DNA of 64,000 nt from Paragordius varius (GCA_964247055.1 OZ176050.1:8432001-8496000), one strand, 5' to 3'; shown: positions 13,407-53,519, counted from the first letter of the stretch. The notes: generated by a model not told the origin, from the letters alone. Program-made: numbers and translations.

Positions 13407-13455
13407 ACTACTTAGAAAAGCTTATTTTACAGATTATAAACTATTTTGTGTAAAT

Positions 13456-15513
13456 ATGTCAGCTTCAAAATTTATGCAACATTTTATCAGGGGAGGTTTG
13501 GGTCAAAGCATTTGTTTATATCTTACCAAGAGTCCCAATTCGCAATTAATACGAACATTTACGAATAATGCAAGGTCTGCTATTCAACCTGGTATTAAAC
13601 GACGTAGTTTAAAGGAAATTTTATTGGCACCTGCCGGACAAGGAGGTTTTTAGTTAATATATTTCAAGCGTTTACGTTGGGTCGTGGTGCTCTTATTGGT
13701 GGATCTGCTTTAGGACTTACGGCTTTATGCTATTATGGATTAGGACTATCCAAAGAAATAGGGGCTATTGATAAAGCAATGTAAAATTATAGTTAATAAT
13801 ATTTAGCGTATGGCCTAAAATTGTTAAAGAACGAATACAAAACACATATCTTTATTTTGGTGGTAGCCTTTTATTTACAGCAGGTTCCGCATATTATGTT
13901 GCTAGAAACGCTACTTTAATGAATATGTTTGCCAGGACATCGCTTTTAGTAAAATTTAAATAATATAAATAAAAAACAATTTTTCATATTTTAACTTATG
14001 AAACAGTAAACAAAATGATCATTTATTAATTTTTATTATAGTTAATTGGTTTAACTTTTGTTGCTGTGATTGATCATTTATTAATTTTTATTATAGTCAA
14101 TTGGTTTAACTTTTGTTGCTGTGATTGCAAGTGGTGCATTATGCAGATCCATTCCATACAATTCCGAAAACTTTCTTGTTAAACACGGCTCATGGATTCT
14201 TCACAACGGTGTTTTGGGCGCAATGGTTGCCCCCATGACGGTCCTTGGTGGCCCATTAATTTTAAGAGCCGCGGTTTATACGGCTGGGATCGTTGGAGGT
14301 TTATAATTTTACTCTATATAATATACCTATAATTACTGTTAAATAAACCATAATAATTTTAGGACTCTCTATGGTTGCTGCATGCGCTCCAAGCGATAAA
14401 TTTTTGACAATGTCTGGACCGCTGGCTATTGGATTGGGAACTGTTTTTGTGGCTTCCTTGGGTAAATATTAGATAAAATACTGATAATTTAGGCTTTTTA
14501 TATTTTATTACATTTCGCTAGTATTCGCAACAATAATTGGCTTGTAGTCGAAAAACGATATTTAGTTTTGTCATGTCTCTGTATGGATAATTTATTTAAA
14601 AAGGGCGTCCTATATAAATTTTAATAATATTGGGCAAAAATTTATAGTTTATGTGATTATATTTTTTAATAATATTGGGTAAAATAATATATATATTCCA
14701 GAAACCTGTCTAGGCCTTTTCCCTTACATTATGTTTTCTAACTTTTGGTACAATAGCTACAAATTACACATAATTTTTGTTTGATTTTATATTACATATT
14801 TTCCAAAGTATTTATCATATCTTTATAGAGATTTTTATTTAATACTTGTCTTTGTTCTATGTTTATAATGGAGACCATTTGTTCATATATTATATATGTT
14901 TTATAGGCGGGATGTTTTTGCCTCCAACCACAGCATTGGGTGCTGGTCTCTATTCCATATCTGTTTATGGCGGTTTGTTACTTTTTAGCGCATTCCTGCT
15001 TTACGATACGCAAAAGATTGTTAAATTGGCCGAAAATTATCCTACTCACAAAGGCGTTACACCATTCGACCCTATAAATGCGTATGTATTACCTAAAATT
15101 ATATAACATAACGGATCTTTACTCATTTAATTATTAGATTTGTTTAGTAGTATTTTCCCAACAATGTAATCTTTAAATGTGTAGCTAAGCTTTTTAACAA
15201 AATTTTAACTTAAATTTTTTAATACGGCGATTATCTTTGTCAATATATTATGCAAGAAGGGTTAATTCAAAATTCAACCATTAAGATATCAGACGTATAT
15301 CTAAGTGATAATTATTTTTTAGTACCTGATTTTATGACTATAAAAATGTCAAAAGCACTGATGAATGGATTAATAAATGCACATACAATTCATTATGGTT
15401 GTAATTTTATTTATAATTTTTGTTACAGATCAATGGGCATATATCTGGATACACTAAATATCTTTATGAGATTAGCCATGGTATTGGCTGGTGGATCTAA
15501 CAAACGAAAATAA
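13456..15513 (+). CDS. GHITM: Growth hormone-inducible transmembrane protein (mitochondrial Bax-inhibitor-1/TMBIM5 family), 7 exons, 334 aa
   Basis: Exons 13456-13645, 13669-13780, 13807-13948, 14097-14298, 14363-14461, 14907-15081, 15429-15513 join in frame; motifs ALCYYGLG..EIGAIDKA, VWP..VKERI, AAVYTAGIVGGL, FLLYDTQK, DPINA, IYLDTLNIFMR. Confidence 0.95.
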
Positions 15514-17150
15514 ACAAAGCTAACTAACCTATAATTACTAATTTAATGATTTTTTGCCAAAATTTAATAAACAGTTATTTTGGTAAAAACAATAAATTCT
15601 GTATGTATATTTTTGATTTTCAATTATGTTAACTCTAAGATGTATGTTTAAATTAACTGTTGTTTGAAATTAACCATCATTTTTCCTTTTAAAACATATT
15701 TTATTATATGGTTTTTAATAATTTATATAGTGTTTCAGAATATCACGATCTAAGTTATTTAGGTTATATGTTTTAATAATTACGGTTCTTTTGTTTAATA
15801 ACAGCGGATATAAACTCTGTTTTTTTATCGTTACATACACTTTTCTATTTGCCAAAAGTAAATTTTCTCACAAATTGATTGTATGATTTTTTTAAATGCA
15901 CAACTTTTAGCCGTGAAATATATTTAAGGTTTCATTCGTTAAAAATGGCTTAAACAACGGAATAAAAAAATATATGGTCAAAAGCTTTAAATGATCATTT
16001 ATTTTTAAATCAACAGCATTATTTTTTAAAATCAGCTGTTAGGTTCCATTGGATTGGGAACCAATTTATGTTTGTCCTTGTAGAATCAAATTTGATTTTT
16101 CAAATATTATACGTTTATAATACACCTAATAGATAAAAATAAGGGATCAGATTGTGGCAATTGTGTCCCATTGTAATTGCCGAACACATGTTACAAAATA
16201 ACAGAATTTTTTAATTGTAGCACGCTATATAATAAAATAATACAATTAATTTTTTTCCTGACAAATTTGGTTATTCTTTCTTTAAGCCCTTTAAGAAAAT
16301 ATTAATTATTTTTTCGAAAACCAGAGCTCCTTATTTTCTTATAAAATTTACACGTAGTGAAAAAGTTGTACTTTATAATATTAATTCATCGTCAATTTCA
16401 TAACATAGGATCTATATTAATTGTTTACATATCCTGTTAGCCCTTTCCCCTCAAGCAACTAGATAATGGCGATTTTTTGATACATTTTTATTGGGTTATT
16501 TAACTAAGGTATGACGATACAATTTTTATTAAAAGACACCCATATAATTTCCCAAATTATGAATGGTTAATCTAATTATTGAAAATATTTAGAAAAGTCC
16601 AAGATATTTTGATAATAAACAATGATGAATGCTACATATGGTTAATCAAAATTATATTTGATAAATTAACTATTGATTTTATAGATAGGTATATAAATAA
16701 TGATATCTGCAGCACTTAATGACTCCTTTATTACTTTTTAGTTAAACTTATTGATTCCATATTTATTTGTAATGATATTTTATCGACGAACGTGCACATT
16801 GTTCACAGGCATACCTGCCTTATATATACGTTATAGCGGAAAAAGCAACTGTCGAAACAATTTTAGGCTTTTTAAAAATATTATATTATAGTTATGCAAT
16901 TTTTTTTCCATAATAAACATAAGGATATATGTTTTATAAGAAATAATTATTGATAAATAAAAATAATATACAGTTAGAATTATTAAAAGTCATAAAAAGT
17001 TGCTAGTATTTGGTAGATTATTTGGTTTTTTTATTTAGCATATTTTCAGCACTGTTATATAATAATAGATTTATGAATATGAAAGCTTATTTATATTCAT
17101 AAATTAATATTTGATCACCAATATTCGCTATTAATAATTATTCATTAGCC

Positions 17151-21700: not shown

Positions 21701-24700
21701 TCAACTTAACTTTGCATATAAGGGTGGTGAAAATTTACGTGCTAAAACTTTAAAAATAACCAAGGGGATGCAACTAATTAGCGTTACCACACTAACTTTC
21801 CACACAAAAGTCAATGAGCTACGTAACACGAAATCGCGGTCAAAATATTGTTCACGAAATACTACGAGAGTCAGGAGATAAACGACCAAACTAAACATTT
21901 CAGCCGATATAATGGCCCAATGTCTCCATCGTCTGACGGTTAAAGCGACCATAAGTAGTTCATTAAAGATGAGTGCTGTAAAAGTTATGGACACAACGTG
22001 GACGAATTCATCCTCAAACAAAAGGAAAGCTCCAAACATTATGACACTCCCTGTTGTAATATAAAAAATTAAATGTTTATTTTACCAGATTAATTAGTCT
22101 AAAAAAGCGTTAGATCAATCTGAAAAATGTTATAAATGTATATGATATATTGACACAAAAACGATAACGCATTTTTAATCATGGTTAAACATGTATAACC
22201 AACATGTAACAGAAAGGTAATTTTCATATAAAGGCCAAAAACCTAAGAAAATGAAATTGTTGAAAGAATTTTTAGATTTACAATTCAAAATTACTCTTGA
22301 ACAATTCAAATTCACCCTCGTACAATTCAAAATCTACCTTAAACAATTTTACCCTTAAAAATTCAAATTCACCCTTGAACAATCAAATTCACCCTAAAAA
22401 TAAAATGTGTGTTTTCGGGCTAATATAACTCACCATTAATAAGAAATATATTCTTATAGCATGGTTATTATTTTTTCAGTATTATATTAATTTTAAAGTT
22501 TCATTTTTTAAATATATATAAAATAATATAGGTAATTTTTAATTTTAAAGAACACATAATTTATTTTAGGGTGATTTTGAATTGTTCATGGGTGAATTTG
22601 AAATAAAGTGTAAATGGTATATACATAAGAAAAAAATAAGGAATCAGATGAAGAAATTATTCTCCTCAAACGTTATGTCAGAAGACCGTCGTTTTTTTCA
22701 TCATTAATTTTGGTTATGTATGGATATGCTATCTTTATACATTAGCGATAATATATTTAGTAAAATACGGTAAATTTATACAAAAATAACACAACACTGC
22801 AAAAAAATTAGGTAAAAAATTTATCCATAATTAATTAATACTCTTTCCTTTTATTTTATTTAAAAATAAAACGCCATCTATTTAATACCTTGATATATGC
22901 TAATAAGAACCCATATGAAGAATGTCTTGTATGAAAGAGCACGGCCCTAATAATAATAAAATATTTTTATAATTTCATGTATTAAAATGATTTTAGTTTG
23001 AGTCCATTAACTTGTCAACATTGTGGAATTCAATGAATAATACGATGAAATAATTAATAATTTTTATATTGGTGTTAAAAAAAACAAAAATAAATTTCAA
23101 TTAAATAAACAAGAAATTTAACACTTTTACTTTAACTAAATCTTGATAAAGTTCAGGATACATCATAGCTGTTTGAGGAGTTATATCTCGGTCGAGAATA
23201 ATGGAGAAAACCGGAAACATGGTGTATATTGTGGCATAACTATAAAATAAAAAAATTATATAATACAATGTTCTTTTTTAAATTATTATCGACATAAAAT
23301 ATTTATTACCCGATCATTAGATATCCCTGATAAAGTGCAACGGAAGCAAAGAAAAATATGGCGGAAAAAATGGCTTGCATGGTAGAAATAATGAGTCCGC
23401 GATGAATTATAAATTGACTAAGAGCGGCACTTCTTTTATAGCTATAGCGTCCATGAACTAGAATTAGGCGAGCTAAGAAGAAATATTGGTTCATAAGTAA
23501 AATAATGTGAGTAATCGTTTTTATTTGAGATGTCTGCTACCTTTAAATAAAAAGTATTTAAAAAAATGAATCCATGTGTTCCCTTTTAAATTATTTGATA
23601 AAATAAATTAATAGTGTATCTTAAGGGCTGTTAACCATTTTAATGCAAAACTGCAACATTATGATATTGGTCAAATATGCAAATAATAATTTTATATTTT
23701 AACTTATCATCTTAAATCTGGATTAGGAAAAAATAATAATACGGTGAAATTTAAAATTCGAATTTTTTTATACTAAATGTCATTATAGACCAAAGTAAAA
23801 ATCGGACAATAGAGTTATATTTATGTTGGCACTTTTGAACAAATATAATATTGAAGAGTTTTAATCTAATTTGTTTATATCATACTCAAATGTGAAAATT
23901 GACAAATGGAAAAATCAGCAGCCAAAGATGCCTGTTTCCCCTCTTTTCCGGCGATGCCGACACCAACATGGGCTGTTTGAATCATACTTACGTCATTTCC
24001 TCCATCCCCAATAGCCAAGGTTCTACATTTTGTCATTGCATTGCAATTACACCAATCTTGGTCGTTTGAACTGGGAGCGATATTGCCATCATGCATAACT
24101 TTAACATATAATAAAGTAAAATGAATATATAGTTTAAAATCTATTTTTTATATATTTTTCAATAAATAGAATATGGATTTCGTTTTGATTTCAGGCTCAT
24201 GAAAGGTGTAAAACGCTAGGGCGGGCTGACAGCCAAATGATGGAAAAATTGTACAGTTTTGGGCTCAAAATACTATCATATGTTGATACTTAAGACCTTA
24301 ATGGAAAAATAATATTGCTTAATCTATATAATATATATTGGCTTGATACCATTGGTATTAAATCTAGAATATATGTAAAGAAAGTAATTAGCAGGATTAT
24401 ACAATTGGTTAACTGAAAAAAATGCGAAAGATACGACACACATAAGTGACCTTAACATTATTGCATAACTTATATATAAAAAACAAAAACACTACTCTGT
24501 GTGTCATGTTTTGGACAGCATCCAACGCAACAACAAAACATCCGTTTACACAAATTTGTTTCATACAAAACATTATTGTTTGTCCTTCTTGCACTTGTTG
24601 TTAAGGGAGGCGAATTATCTGTAAAAAAGTAAATGTCAAACAAAATATGTCATACTTTTGTGTTTAATGGCATGCGGTTTGGTATGGAGGTAATAGGATG

Positions 24701-24732
24701 GCCTATTAATTATATAATATAAAGTGTTATAC

Positions 24733-24795
<63 letters not shown>

Positions 24796-27700
24796 AAAAT
24801 ATGAGTACACCATGTTTAGTGACCTTTATCACATGAAGCATAACAGTATTACCAATTTGTCAAATCAAGCACATTTTCAACGAAAAATTGGTAGATATTT
24901 TAAATTAATAAAAACTTAGTTGTAATAAAATAAAAACTATCTTAAAATATATTTCGAAAATAAGTAAACTAAAATATGTTTCTATTCGACTTAAAGTTCT
25001 ATTAATAATATCAGTTGGGTATAATTTATTATAACACAATAATGGGAAAACACAGTAATGCAATGGACTTAAAGAAGTTGTTGTTTATATAGGTTATATT
25101 TAATTCCGAGAAATGTATACGGATCTTATTATATATTTTTATCGTGCATTAACATATACAAATTTCTGAGAATGATGAGTGTGCATTTATAAAACAGTCA
25201 CGTAGTCTAAAACTTGTCACGTAGTATATAACATGTCACGTAAAATATTAATAACAGAAAAGTATTATAAGTATGCATTGAATAGCAACGTAATATATAA
25301 AATAGAGTTATGTTTTGTTGCATATTATATAACATCATATCATATCTCCCATCTTTAATAAGAAAGATGATCCGGAGCTTTTCGTTCCCGGCGAGGATAA
25401 CGGCTTTGTACTTCTGTCAAGTTACACTCCGACTCCACAGCTTCCGTAACTGGGATCTCTGGTACAATGTCAAGGGCGGGTTGTGACATAACAGACTTCG
25501 GTAGCTGATCGGCGTGTTTTCGCTGAATTTTGCTACCGTCATCAGTCTTGTAAGATAATAATCCTGTTCTTTCAATTACTTTTCCTTTCCGCCACCCCTC
25601 TGCTGTTTCATTTTTAATCAGAATAGCATCATCAACGTCAAATTCTCGTAAGGGGGCTCTAGTATTATCCGTAAAATCTGATGGTATTGTCTTTAACCAT
25701 GACAAGGGACCTAACAATTCTCTTTTTAGGAATAATGAGCACGGTGTTGCTCTCGTTGCACTATGAATTGCTTGCCGATAGCTCCACAAAATGGTATTCA
25801 TTGCTTCTTGCGGAGAGATGTCAGCCCTCTTCGTAGCTTTATATTTAGTTTTCAATGTGTAAATAGATCTTTCTACCAACCCATTCGTTCGTGGGTGATA
25901 CGGACTCGACGTAACATGTTTGATGTTTAAGTGTTTAAGCCTTTCATCAAATCGTGCGATACAAAATACGATGCATTATCACTTACTATCATTTTAGGAA
26001 AACCATATCTCGCAAACAATTGTTCTAAGCAATTTAAAACAGACCTGCTCGTAACTTGTTTCAATAAATTAACTTCCAACCATCTGGACGAGCTGTCAAT
26101 TGTTACCAGCCAGTAGAAATTATCAATGGGACCAGCAATATCTATGTGTATTCTTTCCCAGACGGCGGTGTTGAAATTCCATTTGTATGTTGGATTTTCC
26201 TGGACATTGGGCTTGTATCTTTGGCATGAGTCACATGTCTTCGCAAGCAATTCAATACTTTGGCCCAAGTCTGGCCAATATACACTGTGGCGCGCAAGGG
26301 ACTTCATGGTACTTATCCCTGGGTGTCCAGTGTGAAAGTAGTTTAGGACTTCATTTTGCATGGATCTAGGAACAATGAGTTTATCCTCCAAATAAACTAA
26401 ACCATACGATGCTTGGATAGCGTTGCGATGTGATTGATACTTTTTTAGATCTGGATCATCCCAATTGTTGGAATTTAATGCAATTTTTAATTTTTTTATC
26501 ACCGGGTCCTTATTGGACTGAACTAATACATTTTTTTTATTAATGTTCAAATCGTTCATAGATAAGAACCGAATTTTTTCAGCTACAGCATGATCATCAT
26601 CCATTTCAGGATCGTCGATTGCTAATCTTGATAGGGGATCAGCTAAAGTTTGAACCCCTTTATTGAAATGAATAGTATAATCATACCCCGATATTTTATA
26701 AATCCAACGTAATAATTTTATATTAGTGACTCCGGTTAAGTTCCGGTCTTCCCCAAATAATTTAATCAGTGGTTTATGATCAGTCAATATTTTAAAAGAT
26801 CTCCCATATATGAAAGGGTGAAATTTGTTTACCGCGAACAAAATCGCCTTGGCCTCTCTTTCGATCGTCGAATAATGTTTTTCAGAATTTAAACATTTCC
26901 TGGATGCGAAGGAGATTAGCCGCTTGCCATCTTCGGTTACATGGAAAAGGATGGCACCCAAACCTTCGTTTGAAGCATCGGTCTCAATCAATAATGGCAA
27001 TTGCGGATTGTACGGAATCAGTTCCACAAAATTTGCTATTAGTTGTTTTGACAGTGCAAATTGTTTATCATGAATATTCTCCCATTTCCATGGAATTTTG
27101 TTTCCAGTTAAAGTGTGCAGATCACTTATGACTGAATGTAATCTTGGAATAAATTTTTCATGAAAGTTTAATAGTCCTAAAAAGGACTGTAATGTTGTTT
27201 TATCCTTTGGAACAGGACGTTTCAAAATAGCTTTGATTTTTTCATCCGTTGGCTTAATACCTCTTTTAGATATTTCGTATCCCATGTAGGATACTTTTTC
27301 CTGGAAGAATTTCATTTTATCCGGTTGCAAACGGAATCCGGCCTGTTCAAGTTTCTCCAACACATGCTCAAGATTTGCTTTGTGTTGAGTGTCTGTATTG
27401 CCGGTTACCAGAACATCATCCAGATAAGCACAAACGCCTGTGCAATCATCCAGAATTTGATCCATAACTCGTTGAAATATCATTGGAGCATTTGTGAGCC
27501 CGAAAGGTAATCGTTTATACGTAAAGTAACATCTGTGTGTTGTAATTGTCAGAATATTAGAGCATTCTTTATCAACCGGTAGTTGTAAGTAGGCATCCTT
27601 GAGATTTAAAACTGAAAATGAATGTCCATTTCCGATTTTACCCAATAATTGATCAAATTTCGGAATGATATGAGAATCTTTTGATAGATAAGGATTGATT

Positions 27701-30700
27701 GTGACACAAAAATCGGCGCAGATACGAGCCTCCCCATTGGATTTTAACACGTTGACCGTTGGGGTTGCCCAAGATATCTCAGTTGTTGTTGGGTCTATTG
27801 GTTCTATAATCCCAAAATCTAACAATCTATTCAATTCATTTTCTACCAATGGTTGCAATGATAGAGGAACTATACGGCATGGAAAAGCTTTTGCTTTTGC
27901 ATCCGGTGTCAAAAAAATTTTGATCGGATTGCCGTTGTATCAACCAAGTTCCTTTGAGAATAGTTTTGGAAATATTTTGGTCAGCTCCATCTTCTCATTA
28001 GAATTTATATTATTGATTACACCTTTTGGAAAAGGTAGCTTGTACGCTTTTATCCAAGGTAATCCAAAAATTGGATCAAAATTGCTTTTAGTTACGATAC
28101 ATGGTAACGTTTTCTTTTCATTGTAAAACGTCACAGTGACCATAGTTTTCCCTAAGATTGTTATCTTATTATTATCATACGTGGTTATTTGATCGGACCA
28201 CGTTAACTTAGGGCTACCGATCTGCTTCCATATTTGTTGACTTATGAGACAGCAGTCAGCACCGGTATCGAAAATCATATCTATCATATTATTGTTGATC
28301 TTCACTTTTATTTTAGGGGTAGTGGCCGCTTTTATAGATCTAATTTGATCTAAATTTCTCACCAACTTTGTTTTGCACATTGAACTAAAGTGGTTATTTT
28401 TGTTGCAATTGTAGCACGTTTTGCCCCAAGCCGCCAATTTTTGGATTACCTTGGATAAAAGCGTACAAGCTACCTTTTCCAAAAGGTGTAATCAATAATA
28501 TAAATTCTAATGAGAAGATGGAGCTGACCAAAATATTTCCAAAACTATTCTCAAAGGAACTTGGTTGTTACAACGGCAATCCCATCCTCGTCGCCAAATA
28601 ATATCAGTTGGGTATAATTTATTATAACACAATATTGGGAAAACACAGTAATGCAATGGACTTAAAGAAGTTGTTGTTTATATAGGTTATATTTAATTCC
28701 GAGAAAGGTATACGGATCTTATTATATATTTTTATCGTCCATTAACATATACAAATTTCTGAGAATGATGAGTGTGCATTTATAAAACAGTCACGTAGTC
28801 TAAAACTTGTCACGTAGTATATAACATGTCACGTAAAATATTAATAACAGAAAAGTATTATAAGTATGCATTGAATAGCAACGTAATATATAAAATAGAG
28901 TTATGTTTTGTTGCATATTATATAACATCATATCAATTAATACATAGAATAATAATCCAGGACACGTACAATTTTTACCAAATAAAAACCTGTTTAAAAT
29001 AATAACAATAATAGAAAACTTTGTAAAATGTTATTTTGAAAAAAAATATTTATCCGTGGAAGTTCAACTTTTTACCTGTAAAATTGGGGAACAGCTGCCA
29101 CCACTCTTGATTTTTGGGTAGGAGAAGCTCGACAAATCACGACACAATGAGCCGATAAAGCAGCTTCCATGAACTCTGATTCGAAATACGTCATGCAAAT
29201 CTAGCATTGTATTAAATTTTAAACAAACTTATCCATTAAAAAGATACTGCATGTACGTTTATTTAGATAGTTTTACGACAATTATAATTATTATTATCAT
29301 ATAGAACATTCCGTTCTCGCTGGCAAAATTTATTTTTGAGGTTAATATAATTTATTGAAATTAAATTAAATTTTACTTAGTATTGAATAAATGGTAATTT
29401 ATACTTGGGCCTAATGATATGATTAAATTTAAAAATATTTTTATAAAAGAAAGAGTATAATAAGCCATTTATACACCAAGATGATACCTCAAGAACTGGC
29501 CCTGTCATAATAAATGAATTTCCTGTATTACTCAAACTGGATTCACGAGCTCGCAAACCTTTATACGATACGAGTTCTCTATGTACTAATTCTCGTAACG
29601 CAAAACTGTGAGCTTTATGATTCTGTTGATCATCATATTTGCCCTTAGGGTTAATTGGTTCGCTTTTTATACCGGAATCTGTAGAAAAAAAATTTAATAA
29701 GTTTCTATGAAAATACCTGTTTTATATTTAAAAATATAATAAAATTTATATATTATGAGTGACGATCACTTCGAAGTAGTCTCAAAAATGGAAGATTAAA
29801 AAAATAGAAAATCTATAAAAAGAATCTTATCTCAATTTTCCATAATTATTTAACCCACTATCACGGATTACATATATATATATATATATATTAATAACAT
29901 TTAAAAAGCCAATAAGGCTCCAAATCAAAAATCTTCCAAACCTAGCCTAACTTATGCGATATACAATAGAAAAAAGTGTTTTAATTAATACCTGCAGTGG
30001 TAGGTTCTACATCAAAAGATACATCATGAGAAGCACCAATATCGGTGAAAACAAAAAGCGATTGATTAGTCCGTTGTATTAGATGGGAGCTTTTAGCAAT
30101 ACATATAGCCGTTTCCAGTTTATCTCCTGTTAACATCCATATCTAGAGATAAATTATTAAAACGCATTTTATTGATATTAGAAGTAACAATCATAATAAT
30201 TAAATATGGTTTAAGGGACCAAACTTTAATTCCAGCATTTCGTAACATTTCCAAAGCATGGGGTACCCCATCTTGCAATTTATCCTCAACTCCGGTAATT
30301 CCTAACACCTCAAATCTAAAGTGTTCCGCAATAAAATTATATTTTTTAAAAAAACTTTCCCCATTAAATTATTGTTTTGCAAAAAAATCCATACTTTCCA
30401 CCCTTAACCAATTGGTAAATGTGATTAGTATCTTTATCCGTGTTCAAATTTTCATCAAACATTTCAGCTTTATGTGATGATATTGAAGATAAATCATATG
30501 TGGTAGAAAATTGGTTTGTATTATTATTTTTATTGTCAAAATCATGTTTTTCAACAATACCCATACGAAGTGATGCATTCTCAAACGAATTCATAAATGT
30601 TTGATATTGTTCCTGGCTTAATTTATTACGGCCAATAACTAGTGTCCTTAATCCTTCCCTTGCTAAATTACCGCTTTCTTCATCTATCCAATCAAAGACT

Positions 30701-33700: not shown

Positions 33701-36700
33701 TATAATTTTATCCGTGTAGAATGTAAAAACCTTTGATGATGAAAAAAATAATTGTTCAGCCAATTTGAGTTGATGGTTAACATACGAGTCTGCATCCGTA
33801 GGCCAACAAATCGAACGGCCAGAAGATCCAAGGTATAAACGTTTAAAAACCATTTCATTTTTTGTTAAGGTCCCAGTCTTGTCCGTAAATAAATAACGTA
33901 TGCGACCTGTTTGCCAAAATAATTTAGTCAAAAGAATAAGCGAAATCAATGATCATAAAACTATCAACATTATTAAATTATGTTTAAACTTAAAATACTT
34001 TGTCAAAAAGGAATTTATTAACTTTTATTAATATAATTATATATAGTGTAGTAAAATATTACCTAATTCCTCGGGTATAGTAGTGTTTCGTACGACGTTT
34101 CCTAATTAATAGCATTACAATTAAAATATGTTGGCAGAAAAAAATATATCAAACTTTTTTTTAGAAAAAATGCAGACGACTCTTTATTTGTGAGGTAAAT
34201 TGCATAAAATATAAAAACATTAGAATTCATTCTCAAGCTCCTTGTACATACAATTTTTTTAATCCATAAAAATATTAATAATATACCTGGCATATCCTTA
34301 TCTTTCGTAATCATGTAGGCATAAGCCATTTTAGCCAAATCCAAATTAACCCGTAAACTAATTGGGATAATGTAACTGAAAAGCAAAATAAAGCGGACAA
34401 AATAACGGTACCAAGGTCCTGAAAATCCTTTGAGAACCATTAAGAGTATCGATAAAGTAAGTACCGACATGAAAAGTATTTTAGTTAATTGATTAATTTC
34501 CAGATCTGTCAGTCCAACCTAAAGTAATAAATGTTAAAAAATATTATTTAAGGCATGAGTTCCCTACATGGCTTCGCGGACCGCATTGATAAGTTTAAAT
34601 TTAGTTATTATTTAGTTAAATAAACTTCAGTTAAAAAACATTATTATAATCGTAAAAGTTAAACTGGAATCCAAATTTTTAATTATCTTTTCACATTTCT
34701 TAAAAAAAGCAGGCCGCAATATTGCGGGCCGAGTGTTACCCTGATTTAAGTCATTAAAAAATTGTGTTAACGTATATATTTTATTTCGTCTAAATCTGTA
34801 TAAACTTTGCTCCTAGGCTGTGATGTGTTCATACAACTACGTGTCTCACGCCCCGTGTATATAACTAAGCCAAGCACCGAACCTTCAGAGGCTAAAATAC
34901 AGGAAGACCATATGGTATGTTCAATGTTCAAATTTTCTTTATGTATAAGGCGTTGTTGAGTATTGGAAAAAACACTTTTTTCAACAAAATTTTTCTTTTT
35001 TTGCAAACTGTAATCGGGTTTTGTTGCGGAAGATGAGGGTAAAGTTGAGTAAGATTTTTCATTCGTAAATGCTTGGCTAAACTAATAGACCAAATGGACA
35101 TATAAAAATTAAAATTTAATTTATAATTAGGTCATTTACAAATATTTATTTTATATCAGCATTGTTGAAACTTTTAGATAACATTAGTTATAAAAGTTAA
35201 CAATTCGCCTATTTTGCGAAAATAAGCATATTAATATTTAAAGTTCGAATTTAAAAAATAGAAGACTATTTTCGTCCAATAATTTTTTGGGAAAATAACA
35301 AATTAAAATTATTATTTAAACGTAACAAATGGTACATACTGCATGGAATGTGCCATTGAAAGTATTTATATCCTTTTTGGGTATTTCCACATTAACTTTC
35401 ATGGTGAGTGGAAGGTTATAGATTGAAGTATTGAAGATGGGTTGGGGAATATTATTTTGGTTCATAGAATTAATATCATGTTTGGAGATGATATCTAGCG
35501 ATTTAGGTTTCTGAGTGTCAGCGGTTAAGATTGGAGGACGCTGATGATTATGATAAAAATTTTGTATGTTCGTTTGACAATATGAAATGGCTTTTCTCGC
35601 TTTCCAATCCGTTTCCCCATCCAATTGATCTGTGCGAATGAAACAGGAACCATTCGATTCTGAAGTTTGTAAAAGCAAGATATCGGCTGGTATTCGTTGA
35701 TTCTAAAGAGTAGAGATATCAAAGGAAAATATCGTATGTAAACACTGGCATAGAAATTTTGGATTACATGAAAAAATGTCTATTTTATTCCAATTAAATT
35801 ATTTAAATTAAAAGAGATATAATTAAGCAAAATGCAGTGTAAAAATAAATTTGTAGAATAATCGACATCATATAGTATTAAAAATATGTAAAAATCTAAA
35901 ATATTTAATACTACGGCTTCAAAATATAATTTTATTGCTAAATACCTTATTTAAAAAATTCTCAAATACTTACCATGAGTGTAAGTACATTCCCTTCTTA
36001 ATCTATAATATTTTTCTAATAGTATAAATGATATTGACTATTTTGAATTATCGCATTTTTATGGAGTTTATATTCATAAATATATAATGTTAATAAATAT
36101 TTTTTTCGCTGTTTTATTATACGAAAATGTTTGAAAATAATAAAAGCATGCAAAACAAATTTAATCACACTAGACACACCCACAATATAAAAAAACTTCG
36201 GCAATTATTTTGGGTGTAATATTGTATCATATAAAGAATCCCCTTTTTCTGGAACAGAAATTATTTTTAAAACCGTTTAAAAACCCAAAGCGGTTCATAA
36301 TTCCAAAAAAATGATCATTTGTGAATAATTCTTTTATTTAATGAATTTTTTTGATAAGGTTTTCCGTAAATTTGATAGAATGGCATTCAGAACCATTCAA
36401 CCAAAAAACGCAACTTAAAATTTCTGTTTATTTTTATAATTTTTAAATTCAAGTTAATTTATAATATTAAATAATTAAAACTGCCATCGAATTATAATTA
36501 TATAGAAAAAAAGAATTCAAACAAAAACTATATATTTACCTTATTAATTAAAAGTATATCCCCAACTTTTATATTAGAGCTTTGAATGCATTCGGTGGCT
36601 ATAACATTGTAGTTCTGATCGATAATAATTTTATCGTATTTTGATGAATTCACCTCTTTATCCCGTTGATGACGTCTAAAATCATCTATTGCCTCTCTAA

Positions 36701-37127
36701 TCATAGTTACCATTAAAACAAAACACTATAATATATTAAAATGTATACCAAAGGCCCCCAATACGTATATAAATATCCAATTTTTACTTGGTTAATAAAT
36801 TGCGTGAGAGCAACAGTTAGGAAATATAAATTGAGAAAAAATTTGAATTGATTGTACAAAACCTTAATTCTTAAACATAAAAATTTACCAATGGAATAAA
36901 TGTGAAAAAATTATATTTCTGATTATTTATGGCGTTTCCACAATACCCATTAAGATTATAACCAATATAGATAGCCCGTGGATCATAATCCTTTTTGCCA
37001 AAACATCTGCTTATATTAACAAATAATTTTAATACTTAAATGGTTTTGTACGGCTGGATTTGTCCAAAAGATGGGCTTGCTCATTAAAATTTCTCATAGA
37101 TATTTCTTCATTCTTTTTGTGCATCAT
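21701..37127 (-). CDS. ATP9: P4-ATPase phospholipid flippase, class II (ATP9-like), multi-exon
   Basis: Exons encode [37 protein letters not shown] (phosphorylation site, about 33870), [49 protein letters not shown] and C-terminal [12 protein letters not shown]; probable ATG at 37127 (or 37124). Not every internal junction was resolved. Confidence 0.93.
22272..22619. mobile_element. MITE family D (TACCATTT terminus, 21-bp subterminal repeats) in an ATP9 intron
   Basis: CAATTCAAATTCACCCTTGAA-like 21-bp units at the left, inverted at the right, ending GTAAATGGTA|TA; homologous to 61277-61586; left end degenerate. Confidence 0.75.
24186..24272 (-). mobile_element. Degenerate copy of the tRNA-derived SINE
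   Basis: Minus strand AAACTGTACAATTTTTCCATCATTTGGCTGTCAGCCC aligns with the SINE body GAAACTATACAATTTTTTCATCATCAATGTCAGCCC at about 45380 and 42450. Confidence 0.5.
24734..24791. repeat. (TA)n microsatellite
   Basis: About 29 perfect TA units. Confidence 0.95.
25006..28935 (-). mobile_element. Ty3/Gypsy LTR retrotransposon, defective, in an ATP9 intron
   Basis: Two 337-bp LTRs (25006-25342, 28599-28935; 3 mismatches seen), 5-bp TSD ATTAA, PBS TGGCGACGAG next to the 5' LTR, polypurine tract AAAGATGGGAGA before the 3' LTR, domain order PR-RT-RNaseH-IN. Confidence 0.96.
25355..28433 (-). pseudogene. Gypsy gag-knuckle/pol, disrupted
   Basis: [14 protein letters not shown] knuckle, FDTGAD protease, YLDD RT, TDAS..DHKPL RNase H, HTGHPG..CDSC zinc finger, HIDIAGP/SDNA/NGLVER integrase; one TGA at 27940-27942 and a -1 frameshift at about 25950; most of gag is missing. 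Confidence 0.93.
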
Positions 37128-37163
37128 ATGGTTACATTTTAAAGATCTTTCGGTTCATACCAC

Positions 37164-40100
37164 ATGGAATTTTTGTATGAGTTGCCTACCCTGATTGGTA
37201 TCCTGAAAAAACAGTATCAAAAAATTATTTATGTTAGTTATTCCGATTTTCAAGTTTTTGAAATCGATACCGACGGAAAGTACGTTAGTCAAATATTGGA
37301 TTCCACAGTTCCCATAGTAAAACAAGATAATGAAAATGATAAGTTTTTATACGAAAAAGAGTGTGATTTTATTAACCAAAATATCACCGAAATATTCAAA
37401 ATTAAAGTTTAATAAAAAAATAATATCAGGTTAATGGTATGTCTAAAAGTTCCAGAAAGAGCGTTCATCAATGTGTGCGCAAATTATACCTGAACTTAAG
37501 AAGTGCCACTATGGATATTGACGATGAAAAGTACATTATGATCTATCATAAGGGTATAAATGGATTATTATTTTAGATAATGTAAATATTGTTCCAAATG
37601 ATCCAAAAGATAATAGGTCTGTTCCCAAGTATCTTCGTTTTATTCTTTACAAAGAAGGCATAGATACTCACATGGCTATAATGAAAATGGCACGTATACT
37701 TGGAATTAAGCAATCTAGATTTTCTTTTGCCGGTAATATTTAATAATTTTTATTATAAATTCTTTAGTTTTTTGCACTCTATATATTTTTATTGAACTGA
37801 ATGCCCTTGGGAAATGTTATTCGCCGACGACCTCGTGATAACGACACGATCATGGGATCAAATGATAAATACATATACCAAGTGGAAGAAATGCCTTGAA
37901 CAATATGGAATGATTATAAACGCCACAAAAACAAATATAATGATAACGGGTAAAAGTGAAACACCCAGATACCCCTGTTCCATTTGCAGTAAGGAAGTAC
38001 GTTCAAATTCCATTAAATGCATATCATGTCAAATGTGGGTACACAAAAAGTGCTCTAAAATAAAAGACAAATTAACAAATGTAATAAATTTTAAATGTTT
38101 AAATTGCTTAGACCCAAGCAATAATAATTTTAATCGACCAAAGCTACTTAACATTGATGGACATGACATCGAATTGGCAGACTCTTTTGTATACCTAGGA
38201 GATGTCATATCATTTTAGGGAAGCCCACAAAAGGCTATCAAAAGAAGAATACAACAAGGTTGGATAAAATATAATCAGCTAAAATTTTTCCAAAAACAAA
38301 AATGTTAACAATCGTAATAAATGGTATCTTTACAAGGTAGGAATAAGACCTGCTCTTACCTATGGTTCTAAAACCTGGGCATTAAACAAAACAAATCAAA
38401 TAAAACTCCTAACCAGTGAGAACCGAATACTCAAAAGCTGCTTTCGCATACCAGAATTACCAATTTTCATTAAAAAAAACCGATAAAATCGATTATATAA
38501 TTCAAACTAACAGATTGCGTCTATACGGTCATACTTAGAGAAGAGACGCCACCCATCCGTGAAAACATTAAAGTTGATGGCAATAGAAGAAAGGGACGAC
38601 CACTCTTTTCTTATAATGATAATATAAAAATGGACTTGAATCAACGTAGCCTTTCCACAGAACAATGTAAAGATCGTAATTTATGGAGGAAACTACTTCG
38701 TGGATACAAAACTCCGAATATGGAGTCCTAAAATTATCCATCTATTCATTAATTATTGGAGTTAGGTTTTGGATTGTTTAAAATAGAATAATAATTTGCC
38801 TGACCGCTTTCAAAGGCATTCATTTAGAATTTCGAATATATATTGTAAATTAAAAAACAAAATTTACCAATCAAATAGGTTTTATTAGACCCAATCAATG
38901 CATTTATTTTTTCAATCAGCCCTGTAAATGGTGCCTTCTGTTGATAAAAGAGTTATACTTCATGATTATTGGAGCGAATTATTATGTATATAATCTTGTG
39001 TCTAACTAATGATTCTTTAGGTCATTTTAAAACTGGACACCGCGTTAAAGTTGCAATAGAACTCCGTTGGCCAATTTTTCATTTATTCTTCGATTGAAAG
39101 ATACAATATTTTTATTTTAACTGATTATTTGATATCGATTGCCTATTGTGTATTGTCCTTATATAATTTTGCCATTTTTTAAATTATAAATATATAAAAA
39201 ATATATTTTTTTTTATATATTTAAGGTACCAAGGATAAGCGTGCCATATCAACCCAAAATGTTTGCGTTTTTAAAATAGCTGCGGAACAGCTAAATTCAT
39301 TAATCAACAATTATAAAAATAATTATAACATTCATAAAAACTCTTCCGAATCGGGACCTAATACAAATTCCCCAAATCACGAAACTGATGTTTTGTCAAA
39401 TGATAATGAAAGTAATTTATATTGTGACGATGTAATGCTTAACCGTGAGAACACAGAAATTATGACTGAAGAGAGTATTGAAATGGAAAATGGCGATTTA
39501 TCAAACAGTACTGTTTTAGAGGAGGAATCATTTCATGGCAAAGGATTTTTTAAAGTTGGACACTTTAAGTATGACACTAAGCCTTTGAGTTTGGGGGAGT
39601 TGAATGGGAATCATTTTCGCATCATAATTAGGTTTCGATACATAATCATTATATACTCTTAAAAATATATCAGTTTATGATTACATTATACATATATATT
39701 TTGTAAGTTTTTATACGACAAAATATTTTTTTATTTTCCTTTTTGTTATCTATGCCTAATTTATAATTTAGAAATATGCAATTTTTCGAAGCGCAACCGC
39801 AATCACATGACTGTTCACATTGTAATAATACTCTCAATTGTGATTGTATCAAGAAAGCAGTAAAAGCAACGCTAGAAAATTCGGTTAACACTATAAAGTG
39901 CTTGGGATTCGTTAATTATTTCGGTACTCAACGGTTTGGGATAAATAATGACACGTGTATAACTGGCAAATACCTCATAAAAGGGGATTATGGTCAAGCT
40001 CTGGCCACAATCCTTGATCCAAATAAACCAAAACTCATACCGGAATTAAGGCATTACCTGCTACAAAACGTATCCTGGTACAATCAACTTAAAGCAAAAC

Positions 40101-43100
40101 AAAACACACTTATATTTGGTGGGATTGATCATACGCTACCCTTTTATATGGAATTACCTGGTGATAGATTTTGGTCAAAATTGGCATGGCCAAGCATGTC
40201 AATGATCTCTAAATCACAATTTTTGACATCTCTTGAAAAGTTTTATCGGCATGCATATCCCAAAAATTATAACGATGATAATGACCAAAACCCTAACACT
40301 GCTATGGATAGCGTAAATACTTCCAATGAATCAAATAATGAAACATGTGATCTAAATTACAACTCTTTACCGCAACCTAATTTTGTAAGTCATTCTACAA
40401 ATTCTGTGCCCCACCGTAAAATACGAGATAGTATTGAATATCGTGTTATAAAAGCACTAACCACGTATGGCATTAAGGATGTATTGAAAATCTTCAATAC
40501 AGCTTTGCATCGTAACTTGCGTTTACTGTATGTCCACGCCTATCAAAGTTATATTTGGAATCGTGTTGCAAGCTTTATTATATCAACGAGACGGAAAAGT
40601 ACTGGCTCCAATATGCAAAATGATAATAGTGATAGTAATAGAACTAAGGAAGAAATCCTAAACATTGATAAAATATATGAATTGAAAGTTGGGGATATGG
40701 TGTATGATAACGATGTTTGTTCTCAACATTGTCCTAATAATGGTATGATATGCATAATAATGATGTAGATTTTTCATTAAATTCTTAAAATTTCGTTTTT
40801 TGAAGAATTTGAAATTATATAATTTTTTATTGATAACAAATTGCTTTTCAATACTATTAACACAGGTAAACCCTTAAATTAAAATTCTAATAAATCCCTA
40901 GTTTCGGTTTATTCTGTTTTTTTGTATTGCTTACAATATAAAAGTTTCAAAATATTATGAATTGTTAACTAAGTCGATTACAATCTTATTAACCGATTAT
41001 CATTATAATTTAAATTCTGTGCTACACTCTTTATATGAAGGACAGAGAGAATTATTCCATAATATATATATAATTGCCTTTGTTTGGAATTCGTTATCAC
41101 TGTATTTACCAATTAAATATATATTACCCATTTTATTTTCCTTTTTTTAACTAGCTATATTTTTTGCAATTTTAGAGGTAGAAGCCTATACCAACGCCCC
41201 AAAGGCAAAAAAATTGAAAAAGGACATAAAAAATGATGGATTAAATAGGTACAAACCATCGATTGTACGTGTAACGGATACGAATTTGTCCAAATATTCA
41301 TTTTCAGATATGGTCATCCCTTTGCCTGGCTTCGCTATTGAATATCCATCTAGTCCAGATATTTTAGGCGCTTATAAAACCTATCTTGCCTATGATGATT
41401 TAAGGTTTTTTGAATGAAATATTTTATTTTGGATATATTAAATTTTTTTTCTTTTAAAAACGCTAAATATTTTGTTCAATAGTATAAATGATTTTAAGCA
41501 CAATGTCAAAACGTTATCCCTACCCGGTGATTATAGAAAACTCATTGAACGGCCAAAAGATATGGACGCTTCGATTTTAAGTAAATCTTTTGTAAAATTA
41601 GACACCTAATACTGCTTTTATATAGGCAGGAAATGTATTAGGTCAAAAATATGTCATATATGACAGTCTGAAAGAACTCAATCAGTATAAACACCTTTTT
41701 ATTAGAAACAAAAATTTAATTAAACGTTTAACGTGTCTTTTAATATGCTTAATAGTTAGTTTAAATATCCTAAATTAGATAATAAATTTTTTATTTAACT
41801 GCAAATTAATTATAATACAGGTTTTTAAATATTTTTGATAAAAGTTAACCACAAACCCGACTTCTCTATGAAAATATCATATGTAACCATGGATATAAAC
41901 CTGCTTTATAAATAGTTTTTTTAAACATAAAAGCCTACATTCTGTTGGCTATGCTCTATCTCACCTGCCTAGTGTAAAGATAATTTTTTTATGAATATTA
42001 AAACTACGAATCGGTATCACAAAATGAAATTATTTTTTTATCGGGATGAATTCGTAACAACTTCTAAATTTTTATTGACTCTTAATGAATATTTATTACA
42101 ACATATCTTTAAGAGGACTGAAATTTAAAAATCTAATAGTTTTTAAATTAATATATATGCATATAAATATCTTTTATTTTGTTCATTTGTCGCTATATAT
42201 TTTGAGAATTGGCCAGATACAACGTAATTATATTTTACATTAAAATATGTATTTTTTAGCTTAATATTTAGAGGTGTTTATAATTACTCAAAAGACTATA
42301 AAATTTATTAAACATCTTTTTATTATGGTTGAATCTAACAGAGAAAATTAATATAACTGCTATTTAAATATCTTTCATTTATTATTATTATGGTATAGTA
42401 GGTAGGGCGCCGGACTCTTACACTGCGTGCCTGAGCTCGAACCCCGAAACTACGCATTTTTTCCATCATCACTGTCAGCCCTGGGCAGGCGAGTGTTAAA
42501 GCCTTCACAGGTCCTGATACAATTTAAGTCCTTACCCTTTAATAAAAAAAGGAAGAAAGAGACTCTAAACTGTATATTTTATATATAGGTATTATTGGTT
42601 TGGCCCAGTTATTGGGATTCCATGGATTAATTTACGGTATATGTCTCTATCATTTGTTGCGTTTCGAGGTATGTTCAGGAATTTAAAGTCTTGTTCTATG
42701 ATTTGAGTCCAAGTTGTTTTAGGCCTCCCTTTACGGTTGGGGGCAGGAATCTGTAAATCAAGAATTTCCTTTGCAGGTGAGTCTATACTGGATCTGTCTA
42801 TGTGTCCAAAATACCGAAGTCTATTTGTTCTGATAAAAGCTGTTATTGGTTCTAGTTCAATGGTAGGATTTATCATCATATATTTTATCATTTTATCTTC
42901 CGTTCTTTTCAATCTCGATTCTAATGTTTTTGTGATTGCCCAGGTTTCGCTGGCGTAGGTAAGGGTAGGGCGGACACCCACTTTATACATTTTGATTTTA
43001 TTTTTTACGGTTATGTCTTTATGTGTCAATACATATTTGAGTTGGTTAAATTTTGCCCAGCCGAGTTTGATTCTATGTGATATGGTTGTTTGAGGGTCCC

Positions 43101-45503: not shown

Positions 45504-45506
45504 CAT

Positions 45507-46560: not shown

Positions 46561-46757
46561 TAACTAACTTATGATTACACCTGGTTTTTTTAGACTAGTC
46601 TGTTCGCTTAATTTACAGATCATAAATAATTTTTTAGATACTTTTAATACATTGATTCATGTAAAACTGTTTATCTTCGGATTATAAATATTCTTGAACG
46701 TATTCATTTTTTTAAAAAACGGGAAGCACATTTATAGATTTTTTTAATAACCTAAAT

Positions 46758-49181: not shown

Positions 49182-49780
49182 ACCTAAATAATAAAACGTT
49201 TGTTTTTTAACATACGCACGATCATATTTGGGTCTACCGATCTTTAAATTAACTTGATGTAAATTCGAAATTATAAATATTTGAAACAGGAAATATTGTG
49301 GATTTATTGCAAAGTAAGTAATGAATTTATGATTAAAGTATTTTATTTAAATGATTGACTTTTAATTAAAGATATTATATTAAAAATATTTTTGTCAAGC
49401 AATAATATATAACTGGAAAACGATATGACACATATACAAATATGAGTCAATCGTGACTGTAATGGGATATTTCGAAAAATTCGTTCAAACAATACGAAGA
49501 CAATGGTTTTTATGTTAATTTAGGTTATTTTTAATTCTCACATTTTAGGGAGTCGCTCTTCCATACATCATAGCTGTTAATTAAATGTATGTTTGTTTAT
49601 GATTACTATAAATAACAAATTAAAGGAATATTTTCAAATAACTTTGATATTAACATATCTTAGCAGTCAAAGGGAAATGTAGAATTATTTAATAACAATT
49701 TATTTTTTTATATCAGCTGAAAATCGTATATTTTATTTTGTTAAAAAAGATGAAATGATATTGCTTATATTATTTCTTAT

Positions 49781-50779: not shown

Positions 50780-51356
50780 TCATTGTGTTTTAATAAGAAG
50801 GTATATTTATTTTAATAAAATTAATAAACAATCAATGTTATATTTTTACAAATGATTATTATATCGTAAATTTTGAAACACAACGGCGGTTTCACTATAA
50901 TTACGCATTTTAGAATACCTTTGAATATTTTTTTAAACAGTAATAATCTTGATCGTGTATGGAGAAAAAACTGACCAAAACATTGATTCTGTTTCCCAGA
51001 TCCTTAGAACCAAAATATATTTCTATTTTAAAACAAATTTAATTTATATCTTACTTATGAAAAAAGGTATTTTGAACTTATATTAACCGTCAATTATTTT
51101 ATGCCTTTATAATCGATTACCCAATTTAAATATCATTAATGGCCAGAACTTCTTAAGTTCATATATCTTGAATAGAGTGGTTGAGGCGTTGAATTATCTG
51201 CGTGTGATTACATAATTAATAAATCCAACATTTCACCATTATTACTGTGAGAATCGGGCTAGCCTTGAACCCCATACATTTTTAACAAATATAACTATAT
51301 TTTTTTCTTTTCGGTTTTTATCCTAATTGTGATGATTATCAATTTACCCTTTATAT

Positions 51357-51420
51357 CAGTGGTACTCACCAAAAAATTTTTAAATGGAAAAATATTTTTC
51401 TAGCTCAAGGAAACCGATAA
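51357..51420 (+). mobile_element. Solo left end of the Charlie-like hAT family
   Basis: CAGTGGTACTCACCAAAAAA identical to the start of the 46758 element. Confidence 0.6.
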
Positions 51421-52722
51421 TAGCTATTTGACACATTTTCAGATATTAATCCAAATAAACAAATCAAAAATTTAATAAAAAATTCGGGGCGATTGGTTTT
51501 GGATAGTTTATGTATCTGGAAATTTAATTAACAAAACACTTAATATAAATTGAACACTGATATTTAATAGCGAGAATAGGAGAAAATCCTAACAAACAAT
51601 AAGGGTCCGTTTATATTCATTTATTAATGACTAGTGAATGTAATACGACTTTATGGCATACAGAACATGCGCTTCGGAATGCGATCATTTCAATATTAGG
51701 CGATTAGCAAAAAAACACTCATTAAGCATGTTTATAAAAACAATATTTCATTCCTTACATAAATCAAATAATCTTGCACACAAAGATAATAGCTAATTTA
51801 AATTTGTATGTGGTTTTAGTATGAGATATTATTTTTAAAATTTGTTCATGGATTATCATCAATTGTTATTTAATATTCAATCAAATTTGTCACTCGCCCC
51901 AATAAATAGTACCGGTACCAAATATTTTTCGTAAAACCTTTTGATGGTGTTTTGGTTAAATGTTTTGGTTATGAATCCATTTTATTAGATTGATAGATGA
52001 TCGAAATTATTATGTTGTAAAATTGTCGCATACTCTTAGCTCAAGATAAGTGTTTACCATTTTGGACAATCTTAGGCATCCCACAAAAAGAATGATTTAT
52101 AACCGTTTTGAATATTAAAAGCCCCCTTTAGCGCGGGCTCTTTTTTGGGTATCCTAGATCAACCCAAGAATAATTTCTTTCAAGGAAATTATAAAATATT
52201 TTTTGTAGCGATAACAGTTGTTACCTTTTTCTTAAATTTTAAAAACTTACTTTGTATCTCAAAAAAACACATATAAAAAGTACGTTGTTTATGCAACAAT
52301 TAGCAGCTGGAGTTACGGATCGTTAAACCTAATAAAAGCGGTTTTTATCCGTGGTCCTGTGATTTATCCAAATGTTTAAATTAACCTTGTTCATACTGTT
52401 CTACATACCGTGGATTTCATTATTTTTAACGTATTAGCATAGACCAATCATAAAAATTAGAAAATATTTTAATATAGTGAATACATATGGTGGAATTTTA
52501 TCACGATCATTAATTGTTATTTCATGATTTTATTAATAACCAACTATAAAATAAATTATAGACAAAATTCTAGGAAATATAATAAATTATATAGATTCTG
52601 AACTAAATTAATAAGATAATTTAATAGAAAAAATATGTAAATAAGACACTTTGCACCGTTGTTTCATAAACATCTATGTCGACTAGTGTATATCCAATAT
52701 TTCACCTGATACACCTTTTTCA

Positions 52723-53519
52723 ATGCAAATCGCATGGAAAACGTTTAATCTAGTCTGTGTGGATTATATTGATGGTATTGTAATAATTATTTCAAGGGGA
52801 TTTGTTTTCAAAACTATTGGCTATATCAAGCTTAATTCCTATATTTATTATATTCGGATCAATTACTTTGATATTTTTTAGAAGATATATGCATACAGTA
52901 AACATATTTTTATTTAAAGATTACATTTTTTATTGGAGTTCTTTTAAATACAGCTATTGGATATTCCATAAAAAAGTTTATAAAATCTCCGAGACCAATT
53001 CGAGGTTTACTAAATTTTATATAAAGATAACCAAATTGTATTATCCTATGGCATGCCGTCAAGTCATGCTCAATTTATTTGGTTTTTTATTGTTTACATG
53101 TACTTATTTTTAAAAAATAAGTAAACTTTGATATTTATTTAGGAATATATCGAATTATATTGTTGATTTGGAGGGTCATTATTTTAAAAAAGTTACCGAA
53201 TTCTTGTTTCCATTTGCTCTAACGATTATGGCAATATTAGTTAGCTTTAGTAGGTACTAACAATTTAATTTTATAGAATTTATTTATTGTATCACACAAC
53301 ACCTCAAGTTATTATAGGAAGCATACTCGGGGTTATATTTGGGTTCGCTTGGTACCAAATATATGATCACACAAAGCATTACTACAAAAAAATTGTTAAG
53401 CAGTAATATATATAGATAATTTTAGCCATGTCTGTCAAACCTTTATGATTAAGGATTGCACTGATATTCCGAACTTACTCATGTATGAACACAAAAAGTT
53501 ACAAAAGTTATCCAGTTAA
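52723..53519 (+). CDS. DOLPP1: Dolichyl-diphosphatase 1 (PAP2 family), 7 exons, 220 aa
   Basis: Exons 52723-52774, 52797-52897, 52920-53004, 53027-53120, 53143-53253, 53277-53402, 53426-53519 give a stop-free 663-nt frame with KKFIKSPRP, YGMPSSHAQFIWFF, SRIYLLYHT..QV..G and FMIKD..DIPNLL. Confidence 0.93.

Follow-up and report, generated by a model that had tools for sequence, protein, structure and literature searches.

Does an animal spliceosome remove introns of 22 to 26 nucleotides (nt) from the same genes in which it splices introns of several kilobases? The question is raised by a 64,000-nt stretch of the Paragordius varius genome (Nematomorpha; GCA_964247055.1, OZ176050.1:8432001-8496000), referred to here as the window, with positions counted from its first letter. 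The G+C content of the window ranges from 23 to 37%, mostly about 28%, and animal genes lie in it amid many retroelement open reading frames (ORFs). For four of these genes, encoding GHITM/TMBIM5, an ATP9-type P4-ATPase, PUS7 (TruD family), and a DOLPP1-like PAP2 phosphatase, the original prediction claimed 14 GT-AG introns of 22 to 26 nt (micro-introns; numbered here from the 5' end of each gene, as in GHITM-1). Our analysis indicates that these segments are very probably real spliceosomal introns of the U2 type (GT-AG), presumably reduced to this narrow minimal length.

Every predicted coordinate, length, and end was reproduced. On the gene strand, all 14 segments begin with GT and end with AG; four are 22 nt long, six are 23 nt, one is 24 nt, and three are 26 nt. 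Next in size among the introns measured in the four genes come those of 64, about 69, and about 82 nt, so that the micro-introns form a discrete class of less than 30 nt. They are a minority class, comprising 14 of roughly 40 introns across the four genes. Their description as almost pure A/T with no clear polypyrimidine tract also held: G+C makes up 7.7% of their interiors versus 34% of the adjoining exons, and beyond a short run of T at positions -6 to -4 (29 of 42 positions; p = 0.007) no polypyrimidine tract was seen in the 14 sequences. At the 5' end, A occupies position +3, directly after GT, in 11 of 14 (p = 0.008); conservation is absent at +4 to +6 and on the exon side, leaving 'GTa' as the 5' signal. 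Retention of any one micro-intron leads to a stop within 1 to 36 codons in 13 of the 14 cases, the exception being PUS7-1.

The original prediction further held that removal of the segments yields conserved protein sequence. This proved correct, with collinearity to homologs, for both GHITM micro-introns, ATP9-2, ATP9-3, and all three in PUS7; for the six in DOLPP1 and for ATP9-1, the evidence is internal to the locus. The GHITM gene (13456..15516, plus strand) has seven exons encoding 334 amino acids (aa), interrupted by introns of 23, 26, 148, 64, 445, and 347 nt. Exon 4, compared with 1.84 billion cluster representatives, retrieved proteins that UniRef/NCBI name GHITM, from snakes, cod, and a monkey, and the Pfam Bax1-I profile matches exons 3 and 6. 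GHITM-1 (13646..13668; 23 nt, phase 1, codon 64) introduces a stop after 2 codons when retained. GHITM-2 (13781..13806; 26 nt, phase 2, codon 101) lies within a conserved stretch, ..AIDKA-I-VWPK.., that is collinear with all homologs. The spliced product is 53% identical to the homolog P0128 over residues 41 to 334, and 20 other full-length homologs align with it too; a MAFFT alignment with nine homologs contains zero gaps at either micro-intron junction. Two of the matches, P0128 and P0078, are intronless transcript contigs and are of no use for intron positions, and P0047 and P0142 lack a genomic record. The GHITM gene of the snake Crotalus horridus (L007) has an intron of about 1.56 kb at the codon and phase of GHITM-2, and an acceptor, preceded by a pyrimidine tract, at the codon and phase of GHITM-1. 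The positions of GHITM introns 3, 5, and 6 also agree with the snake gene.

Polymorphism provides a second line of evidence at this gene. A DNA sequencing run (X1) contains two haplotypes that differ at 15 sites across GHITM. Read in the spliced frame, all seven exonic variants alter third codon positions synonymously, as under purifying selection on that frame. The two exon-2 single nucleotide polymorphisms (SNPs) are synonymous third positions only when the gene is spliced; unspliced, they fall at second positions. Within the two micro-introns there are three SNPs in 49 nt, two of them heterozygous sites in GHITM-1, and zero insertions or deletions (indels), while the 64-nt and 148-nt introns do contain indels. 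GHITM-1 and GHITM-2 have strong support as introns.

Two further features were observed at this gene. The intron-3 acceptor and the start of exon 4 are duplicated in tandem (55-nt unit, 14016-14125); only the second acceptor, with an exon from 14097, keeps the frame, the first leading to stops, and an X1 contig carries a 4-nt deletion at 14087 in this region. Between the GHITM start codon and the end of an upstream tRNA-Ser(TGA) gene (13324-13407, minus strand) lie 48 nt.

The ATP9-type gene (21704..37127, minus strand) spans about 20 exons over 15.4 kb. Human ATP9A (9vdk_A) is the best PDB match of its exons, which also match the Pfam families Cation_ATPase, Hydrolase_3, and PhoLip_ATPase_C. 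The positions of the remaining exons come from a tblastn search in which the ATP9 ORFs of a homologous sequence, L006, were the queries, and several intron sizes are rough values read off this exon map. A homolog search with exon 7 brought up other animals, none above 75% identity, and did not reach a close relative. Removal of ATP9-1 (37010..37035; 26 nt, phase 2), ATP9-2 (36863..36888; 26 nt, phase 0, ..FIPL|VLYNQFK..), and ATP9-3 (36726..36748; 23 nt, phase 0, ..YWGPL|CFVLMV..) gives an open N-terminal region of 171 aa. In the alignment to 9vdk_A, exon 2 corresponds to residues 6 to 38, exon 3 to residues 40 to 77, and exon 4, beginning with its second residue, to residue 79 onward, which leaves space for one unaligned residue per junction. 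A eukaryotic contig (L003) has GT-AG introns of 149 and 318 nt exactly at the positions of ATP9-2 and ATP9-3, respectively; the L006 intron that coincides with ATP9-2 measures about 43 nt, and a further sequence (L002) has an acceptor identical in position to that of ATP9-3. Both micro-introns have strong support. Support for ATP9-1 is moderate: it joins the sole upstream ATG (37127) to exon 2, whose own frame contains no Met and has a stop just upstream, and because the ATP9 N terminus is unconserved, a homology check is unavailable there. Counting the two genes together, position and phase are common to other species for GHITM-1, GHITM-2, ATP9-2, and ATP9-3. At least four micro-introns would thus be ancient, their counterparts in other eukaryotes, identical in codon and phase, ranging from 43 nt to 1.6 kb.

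Support for the three micro-introns of PUS7 is good and comes from ordered matches to the human protein together with a restored motif. The part of the gene recovered, its 5' and middle portion, occupies 37164..41414 on the plus strand. Exons 2, 3, and 4 match residues 28 to 71, 103 to 137, and 155 to 191 of human PUS7 (5kkp_A), in order, and the Pfam TruD profile matches the exons at 39226 and 39776; a homolog search with the 330-aa exon gave only three weak, unrelated matches. Removal of PUS7-1 (37214..37237; 24 nt) restores the GILKxxYSDF spacing: the sequence then reads GILKKHYSDF and lines up with human GILKERYSDF, whereas reading through the segment puts eight unrelated residues there. 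PUS7-2 (37407..37429; 23 nt, phase 0) shifts the frame as needed, and its retention leads to a stop after 1 codon. Retention of PUS7-3 (37554..37576; 23 nt, phase 1) leads to a stop after 7 codons. Taken singly, PUS7-1 has moderate to good support. The start codons of ATP9 and PUS7 stand head to head, 36 nt apart (37127-37164), a gap into which two promoters and 5' untranslated regions could scarcely fit.

The DOLPP1-like gene (52723..53519, plus strand; seven exons, 221 aa, ATG to TAA) has tiny introns only, six in about 800 bp. By its likeness to the human sequence, we provisionally take it to be DOLPP1 and not just any PAP2 protein. The spliced ORF contains the three PAP2 motifs (KX6RP, PSSH, and SR-X5-H), correctly ordered and spaced. 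The Pfam PAP2 profile matches exon 4 (profile positions 48 to 71) and exon 6 (97 to 126, from its first residue), and the proposed frame scores best in all seven exons and is the only open one in six, exon 3 having a second open frame. The exons flanking DOLPP1-1 (52775..52796; 22 nt) are open only in the proposed frame, and its retention causes a premature stop. DOLPP1-2 (52898..52919; 22 nt) sets exon 3 in the frame that encodes KX6RP, and DOLPP1-3 (53005..53026; 22 nt) joins this exon to that carrying PSSH, with DOLPP1-like spacing. DOLPP1-5 (53254..53276; 23 nt), which starts GTACTAAC, has the third motif spanning its junction; its removal builds ..SFS-R-IYLLYH... The two others, DOLPP1-4 (53121..53142; 22 nt) and DOLPP1-6 (53403..53425; 23 nt), each have a single open frame on either side and, if retained, a stop after 1 codon. 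A homolog search with exon 6 found nothing, and exon pieces yielded no useful match in PDB, NCBIfam, or three Atlas searches.

Several observations weigh against the interpretation of the 14 segments as introns. As a control, we used dynamic programming on the reversed sequence to find the longest ORF obtainable with up to six free GT..AG removals of 20 to 28 nt, and this also produced 'rescued' ORFs of more than 200 codons. Because of this outcome, ORF continuity alone is weak evidence in this AT-rich DNA; the case therefore rests on homology, conservation of intron positions, and polymorphism, and micro-intron claims in this genome made from ORF continuity alone should be discounted. Among three probable RNA runs under the same species label, we found no contig on GHITM, even at 90% likeness, and none of the sampled ATP9 or PUS7 words. 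A branch-point motif search of the 14 sequences found nothing above the expectation from composition; TACTAAC or TACTAAA is present in two DOLPP1 micro-introns. The single-exon PUS7 matches in the PDB are individually weak (E = 0.016 to 0.16). PUS7-1 is in frame and stop free, so that its partial retention as coding sequence is conceivable, and some transcripts may retain it. Finally, the DOLPP1 junctions and ATP9-1 had no homolog for comparison.

Two screening procedures were dropped: a window-wide 'ORF rescue' statistic, for which the reversed-sequence control was nearly equal, and a naive GT..AG frame scan, swamped by hundreds of false candidates. The sequencing runs that best match the locus are DNA runs. 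DNA runs under four other organism labels, from four other studies, contain 6 to 47% of the words sampled from 33500-41000, which would fit parasite DNA in host samples or mislabeling.

Some of these points favor an alternative in which the class is real and a few members (ATP9-1, PUS7-1, and at least one in DOLPP1) are mis-delimited or nonconstitutive, owing to the use of another GT or AG, alternative retention, or chance pairing. The rescue of long ORFs in reversed sequence, the missing homologs for the DOLPP1 junctions, the unconserved N terminus upstream of ATP9-1, and the stop-free length of PUS7-1, a multiple of three, are all consistent with it, as is an alternative DOLPP1 chain of 249 codons that uses a segment at 53038-53063 in place of introns 2 and 3. 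That chain, however, loses KX6RP and scores lower, and a single frame is open in six of the seven DOLPP1 exons. The six DOLPP1 micro-introns, at 22 to 23 nt, share their end signals with the validated ones, and removal of PUS7-1 restores the spacing of a conserved motif. We consider this alternative unlikely, at a level that still deserves notice.

It is very improbable that the four genes are decaying pseudogenes in which insertions or frameshifts merely resemble introns by the coincidence of GT and AG in AT-rich sequence. GT..AG pairs 20 to 28 nt apart are common in the window, and the silence of the three probable RNA runs would be expected of dead genes. Against this stand the GT-AG ends in all 14 segments, the complete ORFs obtained in the four genes after removal, collinear with orthologs, the four segments located at intron positions of other species, and the synonymous nature of every exonic GHITM variant. 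Equally hard to credit is removal at the DNA level by ciliate-like programmed elimination in somatic nuclei, for although the lengths resemble those of the shortest sequences eliminated in ciliates and the DNA runs may derive from any tissue, the boundaries are GT..AG rather than TA repeats, the segments match spliceosomal introns of the snake and other eukaryotes in both position and phase, and independent X1 contigs keep the GHITM segments in both haplotypes. Judged singly as spliceosomal introns, eight of the 14 are highly likely, those of the DOLPP1 set are likely, and ATP9-1 is fairly likely.

If the micro-introns are spliced, how do they coexist with long introns? The original prediction placed introns of 1 to 4 kb in the same genes. 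This applies to ATP9, with introns of 837 and 4,977 nt, and to PUS7, with one of 1,493 nt; it does not apply to GHITM, whose longest intron is 445 nt, or to DOLPP1. The ATP9 long intron (24099..29075, minus strand) contains a Ty3/Gypsy retrotransposon at 25355-28482 on the same strand, the ORFs of which match Pfam protease, RVT_1, RNase H, and integrase families; the flanking exons carry P-type ATPase motifs, such as ..CRASPTQK... PUS7 intron 4 (37733..39225, plus strand) splits the TruD catalytic motif, which splicing joins as ..SRFSFA-G-TKDKRA.., and contains a reverse-transcriptase/PHD retroelement fragment (37796-38215), an ORF with Pfam RVT_1 and PHD matches. ORFs with a PHD finger directly after the reverse-transcriptase domain are also found at 42592-44481 and 55672-57138, and the three look like several copies of one retroelement family. 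The further proposal that the spliceosome handles both minimal and long introns is borne out to the extent that both sizes coexist in ATP9 and PUS7; because these genes hold tiny introns together with introns of 1.5 and 5 kb, a single splicing apparatus probably serves both.

The strongest regularity in the data is one absent from the original prediction, namely, that no longer intron precedes a tiny one in any of the four genes. They make up the first two of six introns in GHITM, the first three of about 19 in ATP9, the first three of at least six in PUS7, and all six in DOLPP1. They lie at coding positions 50 to 569, and all later introns measured are at least 64 nt long; in ATP9, the exon map places later introns at about 69, about 82, and 837 nt and more, with none of the tiny class. 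The combinatorial chance of such first-only placement in GHITM, ATP9, and PUS7 is about 3 x 10^-6. The gene ends are otherwise extremely compact, as seen in the 36-nt ATP9/PUS7 gap, the 48-nt tRNA/GHITM gap, and a 12-nt overlap of DOLPP1 with an OXLD1-type gene. Candidate explanations of the polarity are a mode of splicing peculiar to promoter-proximal introns or, alternatively, a general deletion bias acting together with the exclusion of transposon insertions from promoter regions.

In mechanistic terms, recognition probably occurs across the intron ('intron definition'), from hardly more than GTA at the 5' end, the AT-rich interior, and the short run of T before AG. The downstream introns of GHITM, ATP9, and PUS7 would then be ordinary ones (64 nt to 5 kb), some of them swollen by retrotransposons, with one spliceosome acting on both kinds. 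A more specific two-regime architecture, in which introns in the first 0.5 kb or so of coding sequence are kept at 22 to 26 nt through nearly signal-free intron definition and downstream introns grow and gain transposons, is a possibility that we advance tentatively and with more doubt than confidence.

According to a paper of September 2026 (PMC13644364, Mol Biol Evol), the animals with introns of less than 30 bp are limited to myxobolid myxozoans and Dicyema. Genomes are compact in both groups, and splice signals are reduced to 'GTa' and 'AG'; the paper ties such introns to genome reduction and predicts that other lineages will have them. The original prediction had named dicyemids among the few lineages with introns this short, correctly, and its list needs the myxobolids added (PMC13644364). 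Like the introns of myxobolids and Dicyema japonicum (PMC13644364; Lu et al. 2019, PMC6736024), those studied here are GT-AG introns of a parasitic animal in a length mode of 22 to 27 nt, with a 5' signal close to 'GTa', a very weak 3' signal, and no real polypyrimidine tract, and they occupy conserved ancestral intron positions. Those genomes, however, are compact (20 to 200 Mb, with short noncoding DNA), whereas the genome here is repeat rich. There, the short class is the bulk of introns (median, 22 to 27 bp); here, it is a minority, confined to the 5' end of genes that it shares with introns of up to 5 kb holding retrotransposons. The lineage also differs, Nematomorpha being ecdysozoans. 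What is new here is the occurrence of tiny introns in a repeat-rich genome, as a minority class with 5' polarity, while their size and signals match the known animal cases.

Chlorarachniophyte nucleomorphs have introns of 18 to 21 nt. Such nucleomorphs and ciliates (Paramecium, about 25 nt; Stentor, 15 to 16 nt) resemble the present case in having a narrow minimal class of AT-rich GT-AG introns, whose retention there as here mostly leads to premature stops, and they use conventional small nuclear RNAs (snRNAs). Unlike the present case, they are not animals, essentially all of their introns are tiny, and they are not known to have 5' polarity or kilobase introns alongside. Stentor, with its introns of 15 to 16 nt, has all snRNAs (PMC9505925), and in myxozoans with tiny introns the branch-site region of U2 snRNA and both U2AF1 and U2AF2 are conserved (PMC13644364). 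By these precedents, the unusual U1/U2/SF1/U2AF geometry suggested in the original prediction would not be required. In humans, short introns are spliced with SPF45/RBM17 replacing U2AF (PMC8363638), and replacement of this type may be a concrete alternative to unusual geometry. In the human case, a single animal spliceosome can rely on a different 3'-site factor where introns are short and their pyrimidine tracts truncated, while it splices ordinary long introns as well; this is a possible model for two modes, although the introns concerned, of about 56 nt and longer, are twice the size of those here. An Rfam scan of the window found one tRNA only and no snRNA gene.

Two further genes were noted in the window. 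The OXLD1-type gene (53508-53858, minus strand) encodes in one exon 116 aa with an Oxidored-like domain, and its coding sequence overlaps that of DOLPP1 tail to tail by 12 nt (53508-53519); an exact look-up of its product, aimed at a merged transcript contig, returned no record. A B3GAT-like glucuronyltransferase gene (Glyco_transf_43; 61913-62674, minus strand) is represented by two exons with about 200 nt of intron between them. The 5' part of this gene did not turn up within the window, and it adds no introns to the set.

Since introns of less than 30 nt occur here in a repeat-rich genome, beside introns of 1.5 and 5 kb, extreme intron shortening cannot be explained simply by compaction of the genome. 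Tools such as STAR and BRAKER have default minimum intron sizes that exceed or border 22 to 26 nt, with gaps below the minimum being scored as deletions in STAR, and genes like DOLPP1 would consequently be missed or broken. The published genome of Gordionus montsenyensis (288 Mb, 26.9% G+C, 63.8% repeats), which the window resembles in its G+C and repeat content, was annotated with STAR and BRAKER at 71.6% BUSCO, and the word "intron" is never used (10.1101/2023.06.26.546503). A literature search, with Cunha et al. 2023 outside its scope, turned up no work on how long introns are in Nematomorpha. As a new regularity, the strict 5' polarity calls for a mechanism, and it makes the question of minimal intron length testable within single genes. 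If the two-regime architecture is true, intron size or transposon insertion would be constrained close to the promoter or the cap. Missed genes of the DOLPP1 kind could inflate estimates of gene loss in the phylum, and under the two-regime architecture the 'rampant loss of universal metazoan genes' and the BUSCO values of about 70% in hairworms would be partly an annotation artifact.

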